A stretch of DNA of 63,325 nt, filler included, from Hyphochytrium catenoides (lineage: Eukaryota > Protista > Hyphochytriomycota): assembly GCA_900088475.1 (NCBI GenBank). It is 7 parts of 7 records of this genome, joined end to end, with 100 filler letters (N's around TTAATTAATTAA, not from the genome) between each part and the next. Parts side by side here need not be neighbours in the genome. Positions count along the whole stretch, not along the records: positions 57,056 to 63,325 come from FLMG01000192.1; 6 more parts are not named here. One strand, written 5' to 3'. Under the pieces are notes generated by a model, which was given only the letters and a program-made list of their open reading frames with translations, ran no database searches and was not told where the DNA came from. Below, in pieces: positions 56,956-63,325 of the stretch. The first letter of the stretch is position 1. Each line of letters starts with the position of its first letter. The translations under genes were made by a program, and so were the position numbers.

Positions 56956-57399
56956 NNNNNNNNNNNNNNNNNNNNNNNNNNNNNNNNNNNNNNNNNNNNT
57001 TAATTAATTAANNNNNNNNNNNNNNNNNNNNNNNNNNNNNNNNNNNNNNNNNNNNCAAGCTCCTCTGCATGGCTCCGATAAAGGGAGGAAACAGCGACGG
57101 GAGACCTCGATCGGATGTCTCTCTTTCGTCTCTTCCTCTTTAAGGCGACAGCTTATCTTGGGATTCCTATGGCAACCGCAGATTCTGATGATGTTTGTCT
57201 CTTTCTCTGTCTTTCTCTTCTTCTGCAATCAATCTTTGTTACGTGAGCACAAGTCAGCACTCTTGGCGTTCCACGCTTCTGACCGCTCCTCTTTCCAGTG
57301 AATGCAAGATTCCTCCCCACAGCTCTCTCTCCCTCTCTCTCCTTCCTTTCTCTCTCTCTCTCTCTCTCCTTCCTTTCTCTCTCTCCTCTCTCTCTCCCT

Positions 57400-57443
<44 letters not shown>

Positions 57444-57855
57444 TTCCATACTATTCGCCCAAGTTTCGCAGGTGGCACGCTTCTTTCATTCTTAAGCATT
57501 ATTCTAAACTCTCCCGTCTAGATTCCATATAGAAATGACTCTATAATAAATAAGGGACCCTGGGGCAATAGACCTTCGTCCCATACATTGCCTGGAATTA
57601 TACCTTGGTCCCTTCTAACAGGTCTGCAGACCATGCAGAGCTTGCATTTTGAAGATTATTGAGGCTTCAGAATGCGGATGCAGATGTCAGAGGGGATGGC
57701 CCAGGCAAGTCGAGCGAGCGAACTGCTGCGATGGTGTCTCCCATCTTTCAAGAGCACAGCACGACTAGTCTAGAAAGTGCCTCTCATTTTCGGGGTACCC
57801 AGTTCTCAGCAATAGATAGATCATAGAGAGAAATTGTTGTTGATCCGGTTCATTT

Positions 57856-60800
57856 TCATAAAGAACTTTTGAGGATCCCGGAAGGATGTCCACCAGATCT
57901 TTTCACCTTTTGCAACAGGTCAAGGAGAGAGACAGAAACACTTGTAAGAGGGTGACATCTTAAGGCCGTGCAGAATTAGTTTGCACTGGGCTTGACAAGA
58001 TTGTCAATGTGAGACAGGATAGTACCGACAAAGAGGAAAGAGATATAGTGGGAGGCAAATATCGATAATATGCGTCGACCCCCACCTGGAAGGTACTCAT
58101 TGAACACATGCTTTTCGCGAGCTCTGGGTAGCTCCGACGTGTTCTCTAAGAGAAAGAGATGAGAAGAAGAGATGGCACTGGAAAAGATCTGACGGATAGC
58201 ATTGCTAGTCAAAGAGAGTCATAGAAAAAGACGAGAACAGGTCTCAGGAACATGTGCAGCGATGGGGCCAGCGTTGCAGAGAGAGACAAGCAGAAAGAGA
58301 GAGAGAGAGAGACGAAGAGAGGAGAAAAAAAGAGAGAGAGAAAGAAGCGATCCGTCGATAGATGACTCATAGCGTCAACTACCTGGAACCAATCCTCGCT
58401 GAGAAAGAGCTGGTCACCGTCATACATACTACAGTCCCAGGGCAATGACGAAGCATCCCTGCTTAAATGAGGCAAGATGGTGAGCGAACCAGGAGCCATT
58501 GCACACCTATCAGACGGCAAATTGGAAAACCCTTGCACCTCAGGCAAAGTGGTAAGAGAAGTAATGAAGAAGTATCTCTGACTTCAGAGCTTCCCCTGGC
58601 CATGCACCCATTCAGTGGAGAGGCCAGCGAATGTGTGAGTGAATAAGCTAAGCAGAAGGATAATGCGGAGAGGCACCCTGCGCAGACAGGACCGGAGTAG
58701 GGGCGAGACAAACCACTATTTGTACCTGAGAAGGGTCTCCATTGCTCTATAGGCAACCAGGCAGTCCTCCCGCGAGAGAAAGAGAGAGAGAACGAACGCG
58801 TCCTCCTCATACGCAGGGCTAGTGGGACAGCAATCCTGTCCTGCCACAAAGCTAAAAAGGGAGACGAGGAAGAGAATCAACTGTCTGTCTCCTTTCATTG
58901 GAGAAGCTCGCTGGTCCACGGTTAACGACTCGCCCTCTTCCCCTTCTGCTTGGGAGCCCGCTGCCCTCTTCCGCCCTTTCACCTCTTTCGTAAACCTCAC
59001 CTCATACGGGCAGGGAGCTTGACAATCTGTTGAAGAGAAAGCACGGCATCCTTTCCGTCTCCAGAATTCCCTACCAATGTCTCTATCACTTCTGTGCACT
59101 GCATGATTGGTACGGTCGGGTTGGTGGACGTGGCAACAAAGTATTGGGCTGCTAGCTAACCTTCGAAGAGGCGTAAACGAGAGAGGTTTGCCACTGAAGA
59201 GTGGAGAGACAGGGCAAAGTAGAAGAAACATAGAGCCAGAAAGAGACCCCAGAGAAGTGACAGTAGCCGATGGAGATAGACCTTGTTGAGAGGAAAAGCG
59301 AACTGCATTTCTACGAAGAGAGCGCGGCCTTCGCCTGTGGCAGAGAGATTGAACACTAGAAAGAGAGAGCCGCACTTAGCTATTAGCCCCATAAAGAGAG
59401 AGAAGGCGACAAGGGCTAAAGGACCTCAGCTAGAAGCAGGGACGTGCTAGATGAACTCGAGGTACTAAAACAGAGAAAGGAGTTAGGATGCTGGAAACGA
59501 TGAGAAGCCATCAGGTGACACCGTCCGTACCTTCGTCTTCAAAGACCTTAGCCAGAGCAGAGTGAGCGGAGACAGAAAGAAAAGTGGGGAGAGAACTGCC
59601 ATATCTCTCCAGAGCAGACAAGATTCGAAGCGTTCCTCTCTTGCGCTACGAGAACAAGAAACGGAGGCCGACGGAACATGGAGGATGAGGTTCGTGCTCA
59701 ATGGGAAGAGTGCAAAACGACTACTTAAGAGGCAGAAGAGAAAGAGCATATAATCTGAAAAGCAAGAAGACAGAGATGAATATCTTACCCGGTAGGATTG
59801 ACGCCAGAACGAGCCTGTCATCAGGAGGAAAGTGGGAAATATAAGACGCAACACTTCCCCCAACCACAACCGAGAGAACGACGAGACAGTAGCCACTGAA
59901 AAGAGAGAAAGTGCCAGACAAGGACCCAAAACGTGCCTGCGCCTGTAAAGAAGACTCCGGAGTCTACAAGTAGTGGAAATGCGGAAATGGGTTAGGAGAG
60001 GCAAGCTAGAGACGAGCGTGAGGGCAGGACGAAAGCTAACCCCTCTTTATCACCTGGTTCCATGCAGCTGTTTCCTCTCTCTTGACCGCTTCTCTTGCGT
60101 ACTCTCTCTCCCTCTCTCACCATCACGTGCCCTGAATTGGGGATTGTTAGAGGCCAAGACCAGTCTCTCCTGGAGCTAGGGTGAGCACAAGTAGGACCTG
60201 TTCGCATGGACCACAAAGCTTCAAAGTAGTCGAACTGCGCGTAGCGATGGCGCAGTCCAGCCAGGAAAGAGGAGCAGGGAAGGTATCTTGACACCAAGTT
60301 CATCTTGACCATGAAGGCAGTCAGCAGCGGTAAAGAAGAAGACAGTTCTTTAGCCCCTCTTTCTCTGTGTCTCTCATTTCTCTCTTTCTCTCTCTCTTTG
60401 TTTCTCTCTCTCTCTCTCTTTTTCTCTTCTTTCTATCACATTCTCTCTCTCTCTCTCATGACCTCCCTCTTTCTCTCTCTTCTCTCCGCGTGTGGTGTCT
60501 CTTTATCTCTCTCGCACTCTCTCTCTATTTATATGTGCCGGTTCTCAATAATCGCCATCTCTCCTCCTTCTATCCCTGTGGGGTGAGAAAAACGAGCTCT
60601 CTCTAGATCCTGCCCTTAAAAGTCCTTCTCGTGGTCTCAGTCCTTGGTGCTCTCGTGCTCCCGACTTTCAAGGCATCCTCTCTGTCTTTCACAGTAACAC
60701 GCCTTTCGCTACGCACTGTCTCGTCCATGCTGTCTCTATTTCTTTCTTTCTTCTACGTGGGCTCCTTAAACTCACCTCGAAGTCGTCAACTAGTTTCAAG

Positions 60801-62099
60801 GTTACCTCTACGATCACGGCATCTGGAGGAGGAAAGGAAGGTCTATGGTTCCTTGGCTCGTCGCCCTCACTATCGCTCCTCTGCTGAACCTAAAGTTAGC
60901 AGACAATCGCAAGGGAGACGTCACGCTGTCAGGCTTTGTGAGAGAAGATAAGCAAAACTCACCAAAACCGTGTACCCAGCCGCCAAAAGAGTTTGCTTGT
61001 GTGAGAGAGAGAGACAAGGAGAGAGAAAGAAAGTGGTAGAGATCGCAATAAAAGAGAGAAATGCGAGAGAGAGCAAAAAATAGATAGAGAGAGAGCAAAA
61101 ATTAGATAGAGAGATTGACGAGAGAGGTCAAGCGAGAGATGGAAATAGAGGAAAGTAGGACTACATGGAAAGACGAAGACATCAACATTGAGCATTGCTT
61201 TTGATGTACACGCAAGAAGAGAAAGAGAGGTTCCTCTAGGCCTGACCTGAATGGAAAAGAGAGAGCAGTCTCCTGAGAGGGCTAGAGCTCGATACTCCTG
61301 CACCAGACTGAAGAGAGAAGCGGCTCCCATGCCGCTAGTGACGCAGCCCATGCCCAGAAGACTCCAAAGAGGTAGTTCACATGGAAGATAGGGACCTAAG
61401 GGTGAGCGTCCCAGGTGCATATTTGTGAGACAGAAGTCCACGAAGAGAGAGAGAGAGAGAGAGAAGAATGAGAATCAACTGGAAAGATGGTGGGAGATAG
61501 GTAGAGGTTGAGAGAAAGAATAAGCTACTAAGAAAGAGGTTTGGGAAGAGAGAGGAGGTCTGTGCATATCTAGAGAGAGAGAGAGAGATAGGAAAAGAGA
61601 CCCAACTAGTTAGGAACAGTGCGGGGAAAGAGACCGAACAACCAGGGGAAAGACGGCTAATTCGAACTTCTCACCGCAGGCAAGCGAGAGACCACAAGAA
61701 GACGCAGTTCGAGCGACCTCTGCCAGCGTTATCCCTGACTGCAAACTGATATCAGCAACTCACTCTCTCCTCTCTCCATCTTATTCTTCTTTGGCTCTCT
61801 CCCTCTTCCGCCTTCTTGCGCGCTCTCTCTCTCTCTCTTTCTCTGTTTTCTCCCTACACCTTCGTTTTCTTGAAAGGTCAGCAAGAGGACGGAGGGGTAC
61901 AATGAGAGAGAGGCCGTACTTGGACCCGAATGGTCTTGGCGCGTTCATCCAGATGAAGTACTTTTCTAAGCCCTCCAAGGGAAATATGGACGTCTCCTCT
62001 CTTTCTAACTGTTTCCCAGGTCATGCATAGCCGAGAGAGAGGCAGATAAAGAGACCAAAAAAGCAGAGATGGGAGTTTTAGGGAAATGCATTGAAGGGA

Positions 62100-62136
<37 letters not shown>

Positions 62137-62525
62137 AGGTGAAGAACTTAATAAAGAGAAAAAAAGACTCTCTTGGGAAGCCAGAAGAAGGTGCCAGAGG
62201 ACATCCAGAGAGAGACTTACCACCAGAAATGCTTAGAAATCTCACTCTCAGTCCTCCTTTCTCTCTCTCTCTTTCTGTGGCTCGAAGTAGATTTTGAAGC
62301 TCTTCCACCGACGCTGGAGTGGCAAGAAACGGAGAAACTGGAGGGCTCTCTGGTTTTGAGAAGAGAGAGAGATCGGATCAAACCGCGAGAGAGTGAATGA
62401 GAGAGAGAGGGAGAAAGAGAGGAGAGAATAGGCGCGAGAGTCTCACGAAAGGGGACAAATTGCTAGGAAGGAAGACAACATCATAAGGACAATAAACTGC
62501 TGAAGCCAGAGAGGGAGAGGAACAG

Positions 62526-62564
<39 letters not shown>

Positions 62565-63259
62565 GAGCACAAGAAAGACCCTTCCTGTCAAGCCAAGACT
62601 AGGAGACAAAAGAAGGAGGAGTCCCATGGGTAGAGAGAAGATGGAGATACTTCCGCAATACCGGTCGCCAGAGATGGCTGGCTCGTCTCTTCTCTCTCTT
62701 TGGTCCCCAGGACAGCGTCATCTTCCTTCCCTTGGCACCTCTCTTCCCCTAGGAAACTCTGCACCCGCTGGATGTATTTCCTTCTAGCTTCTCTCCTCGA
62801 CAAGCCAACATTGTTCTTCCAGGCATCCCTAGGGTCGGGGTAATGAGAGAGAAGAAAGACAGAAAGAGAAGACACAATATGCAGAGAAAAAGAGAGGAGA
62901 AGAGAGACGGAGATTGAATACCTGTGGAAACCNNNNNNNNNNNNNNNNNNNNNNNNNNNNNNNNNNNNNNNNNNNNNNNNNNNGAGAAAGCGAGAGAGAG
63001 AGGAAGAGAGAGAGCAGAGAGAGAAGCGGAGAATGGAAAGAGGAAACAAGAAGGAAGAGAGAGGGAGAGAGATAAAAGTAACACGCATAGAGAAACGTAT
63101 TCCGAAATGAGAAAGAAAAAGAAGATTAGAGGAAGCTGCGAGCGACTCTCAAAGAACTCTCAGGGAAGAAGAATAAGCGATCAAAAGCGGAAGGAAGGGA
63201 AGAGAGAGCGAAAGGTCTCGATCCGCACCATTTTGCACGGCCCACAAGATCCATAAGAC
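57856..63259 (-). CDS. Multi-exon gene: acyl-CoA-binding (ACBP) domain followed by a divergent VAO/PCMH FAD-binding and ALO-type (aldonolactone oxidase-like) region; 5' end outside the window
   Basis: ACBP: GLMDLVGRAKW|DAWKNNVGLSRREARRKYI (63259-63229, 62829-~62650). FAD domain: PASVEELQNLLRA..LRVR (~62337-62221), ISLGGLRKVLHLDERAKTIRVQ (~62008-61919), GITLAEVARTASSCGLSL (~61734-61675). ALO region: VEMQFAFPLNK (~59334-59282), PYEVRFTKE|DCCPTSPAYEEDAFVL, ILPHLSR, RRSYPELAK. Confidence 0.7.
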
Positions 63260-63325
63260 CTAGAAAGAGACGGAAAAGAGAGAGACAGAGAGAGAGAGAG
63301 AGAGTAAGAGAGAGAGACTACTGGG

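Follow-up and report, generated by a model that had tools for sequence, protein, structure and literature searches.

The minus strand of positions 57056-63325, the real sequence under study within the window (the whole stretch of DNA that was analysed, 63,325 nucleotides), carries all features of interest: two upstream exons, for which an identity as the end of an acyl-CoA-binding protein (ACBP) domain is supported, and 13 downstream exons, for which an identity as a divergent VAO/ALO-type protein (FAD_binding_4 plus ALO) is likewise supported. The homology goes beyond chance, and we consider it plausible but unproven, with a probability of roughly 55%, that both sets of exons belong to a single fused gene transcribed as one mRNA. 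A 15-exon model with GT-AG borders throughout gives a single open frame of 571 codons plus a TAA at 57976-57978, and the style of the gene is eukaryotic: its exons are short, its GT-AG introns measure 143-472 bases, and (CT)n/(GA)n arrays are numerous. A fusion of this kind, with its motifs spread over small exons, had been proposed in a sequence-only reading of the same DNA. The small GT-AG exons were found as described, all on the minus strand, and the domain calls and the canonical open frame agree with the fusion, to which a separate start at ATG 62475, equally open, is the counterweight; the proposed end of the locus at 57856 lies about 120 bases too far, given the TAA.

The ACBP assignment draws on the following features.

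63229-63259, minus strand: E1, end of the ACBP helix 3 region (..LMDLVGRAKW), with acceptor tttctag/GT and donor TG/GTGCGG.
62829-63228, minus strand: intron 1, which holds an assembly gap, with GT..AG borders and 79% C+T on the sense strand.
62662-62828, minus strand: E2, ACBP helices 3-4 (DAWK..EARRKYIQRV) and a purine-rich acidic linker, with a Pfam ACBP match and the model donor ACC G/GTATTG.
62588-62661, minus strand: read-through of the ACBP frame to a TGA (62588-62590), intron-like in composition, with alternative donors at 62651 (GAA/GTATCT) and 62608.

E1, with GRAKW at 63231-63245, ends in ..GRAK plus TG before GTGCGG, and E2, in which DAWK...EARRKYI runs from 62827, begins at 62828 after ..ccctag with G GAT GCC TGG AAG. 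GT-AG splicing of the two restores the split TGG codon and with it the helix 3 motif GRAKW-DAWK, as the sequence-only reading had it, and RRKYIQ of helix 4 is also present. Against Pfam ACBP (PF00887), E2 alone gives E 0.0035 and 17.9 bits over profile positions 55-76 of 76, the gathering score being 28.3 bits, while E1 is too short for a match of its own to the Pfam hidden Markov model (HMM). Both the ligand lysine of K-W-D-A-W and the tyrosine of helix 4 (Y-I/V) are present, their roles being known for bovine ACBP. E1 opens with 2 bases of a split codon behind a good acceptor, and between it and 63325 the sense strand is intron-like, with C+T at 86%. The piece thus holds only the C-terminal half of the domain, and its edge at 63325 cuts off the start codon and the N-terminal half, with the first ~44 profile positions. 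Past the domain, a purine-rich, exon-like extension of 30 codons continues in the ACBP frame, which then runs on open to the TGA and meets GT donors at 62662, 62651 and 62608, in accordance with the earlier claim of an uninterrupted linker ending at a GT donor.

An N gap at 62933-62983 lies inside intron 1, between both ACBP exons; no frame crosses it, so its uncertain length is without effect on the reading frame. That this length is an estimate, and that low-complexity GA repeats stand at the gap border, could point to a scaffolding artefact in which the two sides are not genomic neighbours and E1 belongs elsewhere. We regard such an artefact as highly improbable. The flanks carry successive pieces of a single ACBP motif that agree in strand and order and are complementary in split-codon phase; a false scaffold join therefore seems very unlikely, and the flanks are in all likelihood truly adjacent in the genome. 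The match of the flanks does not prove that the intron is complete: sequence may be missing from it, and the length of intron 1 in the assembly is an estimate only. The fusion question is in any case independent of E1, as E2 and E3 stand on the same side of the gap. Directly adjoining the gap is a 12-base GA-rich low-complexity array (62984-63032), which is probably the cause of the assembly break, and further dinucleotide (CT)n/(AG)n arrays occur at 57323-57439 (plus strand), 58278-58345, 60357-60486, 62103-62132, 62508-62560 and 63277-63317.

For the downstream exons, a local profile was made from bacterial genomes, a collection of which was scanned with a DNA pattern for the motif GGRPHWGK; this gave 86 complete open reading frames (ORFs) and a profile of 437 positions; the five of these proteins checked against Pfam were FAD_binding_4 plus ALO (E down to 1e-84). 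The joined 15-exon model was scored against this local profile only, and all Pfam and NCBIfam figures refer to single exons or ORF pieces. When 231 stop-free six-frame pieces from both strands were compared with the local profile, five of the six best were E4, E3, E7, E5 and E8, which match profile positions 61-88, 24-44, 176-204, 86-108 and 196-225 respectively, all on the minus strand and collinear with their genomic order. Exons joined with X at the junctions score 29.8 bits (E 1.8e-11), which none of 500 within-exon shuffles and none of 500 exon-order permutations reach. With the split codons restored and the junctions refined, the spliced model reaches 51.8 bits (E 4e-18), or 55.4 bits (E 3e-19) if donor 62203 is used; the value of 51.8 bits was attained neither by 500 within-exon shuffles (best 4.4 bits) nor by 500 exon-order permutations (best 41.2 bits). 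The match of the spliced model consists of three collinear blocks (profile 25-108, 176-228 and 303-381), of which the first has 26.6-30.3 bits (i-E ~1e-11 against the full-length local profile) and the two cap blocks 10.5 and 11.0 bits respectively (i-E ~1e-5). The cap part alone gives 8.3 bits, a score that 0/300 shuffles reach.

The 13 downstream exons were placed by reading the strand, and all have GT-AG borders.

62221-62349, minus strand: E3, start of the FAD-binding domain (..ATPASVEELQNLL..GLRVRF..ISG), profile 24-44; donor G/GTAAGT, no in-frame ATG.
61920-62008, minus strand: E4 (..DVHISLGGLRKVLHLDERAKTIRVQ), the sole Pfam FAD_binding_4 match and the best of the 231 six-frame pieces, profile 61-88.
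61675-61738, minus strand: E5 (SGITLAEVARTASSCGLSLAC), profile 86-108; borders tttgcag/ and G/GTGAGA.
61247-61395, minus strand: E6, second flavin-binding loop region, placed collinearly by hmmalign, with no local match of its own; GT-AG borders.
60776-60889, minus strand: E7 (..AVIVEVTLKLVDDFE), end of the FAD-binding domain, profile 176-204.
60121-60303, minus strand: E8 (..FDYFEALWSMRTG..), start of the cap/ALO domain, profile 196-228; donor ATG/GTGAGA.
59789-59942, minus strand: E9, a hydrophobic segment (Kyte-Doolittle maximum 2.04) without profile support, where the family is variable; borders tttacag/ and G/GTAAGA.
59531-59635, minus strand: E10 (..ALAKVFEDE), in-frame partner of the strong donor 59789; donor G/GTACGG.
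59248-59334, minus strand: E11 (..ALFVEMQFAFPLNKVYLHRLLSLLW), profile from 303 and continuous into E13/E14; its junction was picked from 38 open options.
58983-59026, minus strand: E13 (CQAPCPYEVRFTKE), Glu-x-Arg of the catalytic cavity, profile fpvevRv block; borders tctcttcaacag/ and GAG/GTGAAA.
58726-58835, minus strand: E14 (DCCPTSPAYEEDAFV..AYRAMETLL), profile wLSpaygrd block, to position 381.
58383-58506, minus strand: E15 (..SLTILPHLSRDAS..SMYDG..DWFQ), at the expected HWGK position, by eye only; GT-AG borders, open frame.
57976-58143, minus strand: E16 (..PRAREKHVFNEYL..), hydrophobic C-terminal tail, open frame to TAA 57976-57978, without profile support.

The motifs quoted in the sequence-only reading (PASVEEL, ISLGGLRKVLHLD..TIRVQ, GITLAEV, EMQFAFP and PYEVRF..SPAY) are thus found on GT-AG exons collinear with the FAD_binding_4 plus ALO profile, apart from 'YP', which is not placeable. 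That reading had left two junctions unphased, and open GT-AG solutions were found for both. Donor 59789 (G/GTAAGA) pairs in frame with acceptor 59635, and donor 59248 with acceptor 59026; with the latter junction, E11, E13 and E14 align to the profile as one continuous block. Pseudogene frameshifts at ~59000-59300 and 59650-59790 were considered and rejected, there being open GT-AG solutions at both places. Which donor is used is uncertain for E11 and for E3 (62221 or 62203); in E3 the alternative donor 62203 (GTCCTC) adds GKSLSG and lifts the score of the whole model by 3.7 bits (51.8 against 55.4 bits).

Whether the two sets of exons form one gene turns on the stretch between E2 and E3. This spacer (62350-62661, 313 bases) resembles the majority of the gene's introns (143-472 bases, C+T 0.66-0.79) in size and composition, with a sense-strand C+T of 75%, and differs from the sequence past the stop codon, where C+T is 0.17-0.54. 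The switch in composition occurs at ~62660, the site of the GT donors, from exon-like values of 0.23-0.35 (E2 0.33) to intron-like values of 0.55-0.97. That E3 has no ATG was also counted for one transcription unit. Within the spacer lies one further candidate feature.

62447-62499, minus strand: candidate 53-base mini-exon, with acceptor ggcttcag/ and strong donor TC/GTGAGA; it has ATG ATG at 62475, followed by a hydrophobic peptide.

The frame of the mini-exon is open both as an internal exon and as a first coding exon, with no profile support either way; in a fused gene it could serve as a cassette exon, in a two-gene layout as the opening coding exon of the second gene. The second option leads to a different arrangement, in which a small ACBP gene running to the TGA at 62588-62590 is followed on the same strand by a separate ALO-like gene from ATG 62475, the mini-exon providing a hydrophobic 12-residue start (MMLSSFLAICPL) and being spliced from TC/GTGAGA to acceptor 62345. 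Such a separate-gene model is open and has a strong donor, the profile score does not change when the ACBP exons are left off, and stand-alone ACBPs of ~90 residues are the commonest form. We nevertheless consider two genes rather unlikely. The layout leaves only ~110 bases from the ACBP stop to the next ATG for a 3' end, a promoter and a 5' untranslated region (UTR), in a gene where introns alone take 143-472 bases; the ACBP domain is followed by a purine-rich extension of 30 codons and then by intron-like composition exactly at the GT donors; and a good acceptor precedes the mini-exon, as expected of an internal exon. A further idea, that the E2 tail (..LYPWDSSFF) or the mini-exon might supply the family's N-terminal W-x-N-W strand, was rejected, since no junction variant aligns before profile position 24.

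Several observations weigh against a single fused gene or against the domain calls on which it depends. At the junction itself, the acceptor cluster ccagagag..ccag at 62337-62349 offers all three phases, so that an in-frame fit is expected by chance and carries no weight. Open frames result from five fused in-frame junctions as well as from one separate-gene start (ATG 62475, GTGAGA donor), and the profile does not tell these variants apart. All three frames are stop-poor at 62588-62661, which makes the openness of the ACBP frame there weak evidence. The introns E4/E5 (61739-61919) and E7/E8 (60304-60775) are purine-rich, with C+T of 0.34 and 0.28, and pyrimidine richness is therefore no strict mark of an intron. 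The ACBP N-terminal half, with the helix-2 ligand residues (Y-K-Q-A-T-x-G-D), is upstream of 63325. As for the downstream exons, these were initially chosen by eye with the aldonolactone-oxidoreductase family in mind, E9, E10, E15 and E16 are without local profile support, and exon-level Pfam and NCBIfam results are below threshold for both FAD_binding_4 and ALO. No orthologous locus that could test a conserved ACBP-VAO link was found in single-exon protein and metagenome searches, and the fusion is proposed here from genomic sequence. As to composition more generally, the other introns are pyrimidine-rich (0.59-0.79, except 0.42 and 0.48), so that both polarities of the (GA)n/(CT)n arrays are represented in this one gene.

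The exon-level searches deserve some comment, as the Pfam scan suggested in the sequence-only reading gave a mixed answer, with ACBP found on E2 at the E value given above, FAD_binding_4 only at E 0.11 and ALO without a match. E4 is the exon that matches FAD_binding_4 (PF01565), with 12.7 bits (cut-off 26.4) over profile positions 43-69 of 139, whereas ALO (PF04030) has no Pfam match on single exons or ORF pieces and NCBIfam has none on exons. With lengths of 14-61 residues and their divergence, the exons are under the detection range of single-exon searches, which makes this a weak negative. Searches for relatives gave a similar picture. Phmmer with single exons against sequences of the Protein Data Bank (PDB) returned noise only (an esterase, foot-and-mouth disease virus (FMDV) VP3 and a consensus tetratricopeptide repeat (TPR)); an exhaustive search of 1.84 billion representatives with the 219-residue ORF piece holding PYEVRF..SPAY returned one spurious bacterial repeat protein; word-index protein searches had no matches to either the ACBP exon piece or the PYEVRF-SPAY region; and the ESM Atlas gave no usable match to E8. 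A metagenome match to E8 (L121:149-271, on a 69%-GC contig) was rejected as an orthologue, being a chance 8-residue word, SFLAGLRH. A literature search found no paper in which ACBP is joined to a module of ALO type or to a FAD-linked oxidase.

The state of the flavin and active-site motifs bears on what the downstream protein may do. The G-x-G-H-S loop (vvGsGHS in the profile) is either shortened by four residues, if the E3 donor is GTAAGT (62221), or reads ISGGKS, if it is GTCCTC (62203); the flavinylation histidine is absent in both splice variants, which agrees with the sequence-only reading that the loop is not evident. GTHGTG of the family reads VTSGMG in E6 when aligned with hmmalign. 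The catalytic Glu-x-Arg, on the other hand, is kept, PYEVRF aligning to the fpvevRv block of the profile. The H-W-x-K motif is not recognised, the alignment ending at profile position 381, just before GGRPHWGK. By eye the region reads PHLSR, with Arg at the place of Lys; the proposed equivalence of ILPHLSR to GRPHWGK is accordingly a resemblance by eye that the profile does not bear out, as E15 and the last exon, E16, score nothing against a C-terminal sub-profile, nor does any other piece of the window do better. It should be added that the members of the local profile were selected on GGRPHWGK, which biases it against the version of this block in the window. The HWGK lysine we take to be Lys456 of GalDH by position only. 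In the family, GULO and ALO hold FAD via an 8alpha-N1-histidyl link, whereas GalDH binds FAD non-covalently, and plant GalDH, which is also without the flavinylation histidine, is active with non-covalent FAD (PMC11099136). In GalDH, Glu386 and Arg388 lie in the catalytic cavity, Arg388 being essential, and the family-conserved pair Arg388-Lys456 is reported to stabilise the substrate alkoxide (PMC11099136).

From the absence of the flavinylation histidine we infer that the VAO module would be unable to carry 8alpha-N1-histidyl FAD and would thus not be a covalent flavoenzyme, or oxidase, of GULO/ALO type. The description of the flavoprotein as degenerate therefore holds for the missing histidine and for the change from GTHGTG to VTSGMG; as the catalytic cavity retains its Glu-x-Arg, the status of the protein as a pseudoenzyme is not established. 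The same losses, together with an HWGK region that the profile cannot recognise and the failure of single-exon searches to find relatives, might be taken as signs of a non-functional relic, that is, of an ALO/GULO-type gene in decay, with or without the ACBP exons and possibly unexpressed. To this can be opposed 571 codons that are stop-free over 15 exons, all with GT-AG borders, the open solutions at both junctions formerly left unphased, and the conserved Glu-x-Arg, and a relic appears improbable to us. Parasitic apicomplexans are reported to lack GULO and GalDH, and chromerids to have retained GULO (PMC4396506), a report that would count in favour of a relic only for an organism of that group.

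Taking a single fused gene as the preferred reading, we would expect one intron-rich minus-strand gene, its 5' end cut by the edge of the piece, whose product comprises, from N to C terminus, an ACBP four-helix module, an acidic linker of ~30-45 residues, a divergent FAD_binding_4 domain with an ALO-type cap, and a hydrophobic tail. The ACBP head would bind long-chain acyl-CoA. For the VAO module two roles come into question: that of a GalDH-like dehydrogenase binding FAD non-covalently, and that of a flavin-free module for ligand binding or scaffolding. The hydrophobic stretches of E9 and of the C-terminal tail (Kyte-Doolittle 2.04 and 1.88) suggest a membrane association; the two segments may hold the protein at a membrane, where the ACBP head would deliver or sense acyl-CoA. 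The C-terminal extension amounts to ~37 residues (57979-58090) past the usual family end (..FNEYL) and includes a 20-residue hydrophobic stretch, and the tail is reminiscent of a tail anchor. Tentatively, and at a little short of even odds, we propose that such a single polypeptide, with an ACBP head and a VAO/ALO fold devoid of covalent flavin and HWGK, represents a new class of ACBP proteins in which the lactone-oxidoreductase fold has been turned, at a membrane, to sensing or chemistry linked to acyl-CoA.

Each known ACBP fusion has pointed to a site of acyl-CoA pool handling, and the aldonolactone-oxidoreductase fold has so far been associated with the synthesis of vitamin C and, in plants, with the assembly of complex I. 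If correct, the fusion would link acyl-CoA binding to the flavoprotein scaffold of the aldonolactone oxidoreductases, and would offer a natural case of this fold losing covalent flavin and HWGK with the Glu-x-Arg kept. If there are instead two genes, the finding reduces to a very divergent ALO-type homologue, one that escapes ordinary HMM scans at exon level.

How does the window protein compare with known systems? With the aldonolactone oxidoreductases (GULO, ALO and GalDH) it shares the same order of blocks over both domains: the P-x-S-x-E-E-L start, the L..vl.vD...tv.v.aG strand region and the vtl.vvp.f end of the FAD domain, followed by the F.f.W.p.t cap start, E-Y-A-x-P, P-x-E-V-R-F and L-S-P-A-Y. 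It differs from them in that the loop is deleted or reads GGKS, in VTSGMG for GTHGTG, in an unrecognisable HWGK block, in the missing N-terminal W-x-N-W-x-G stretch, in its C-terminal extension, and in the ACBP module that may precede it. Lacking the loop and HWGK features in its predicted sequence, it is not filed as a regular aldonolactone oxidoreductase; within that family GalDH resembles it most, as neither has the flavinylation histidine. A statistically solid match is obtained only with the 86 bacterial FAD_binding_4 plus ALO oxidoreductases (51.8-55.4 bits), from which the window protein differs in that these are single-module proteins of ~390-510 residues with GGRPHWGK. On the ACBP side, multi-domain proteins include ACBD4/5 (tail-anchored), ACBD6 (ankyrin), ECI2 (enoyl-CoA isomerase) and the plant kelch-ACBPs, and there are GOLD fusions as well. 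Toxoplasma is reported to have two ACBPs, one of them with ankyrin repeats (TgACBP2) (PMC6199492). In the multi-domain ACBPs the ACBP module stands N-terminal to the second module, as it would in the proposed fusion, and the hydrophobic C-terminal tail recalls ACBD4/5; unlike the known partners, the partner proposed here would be a module of VAO/ALO fold.

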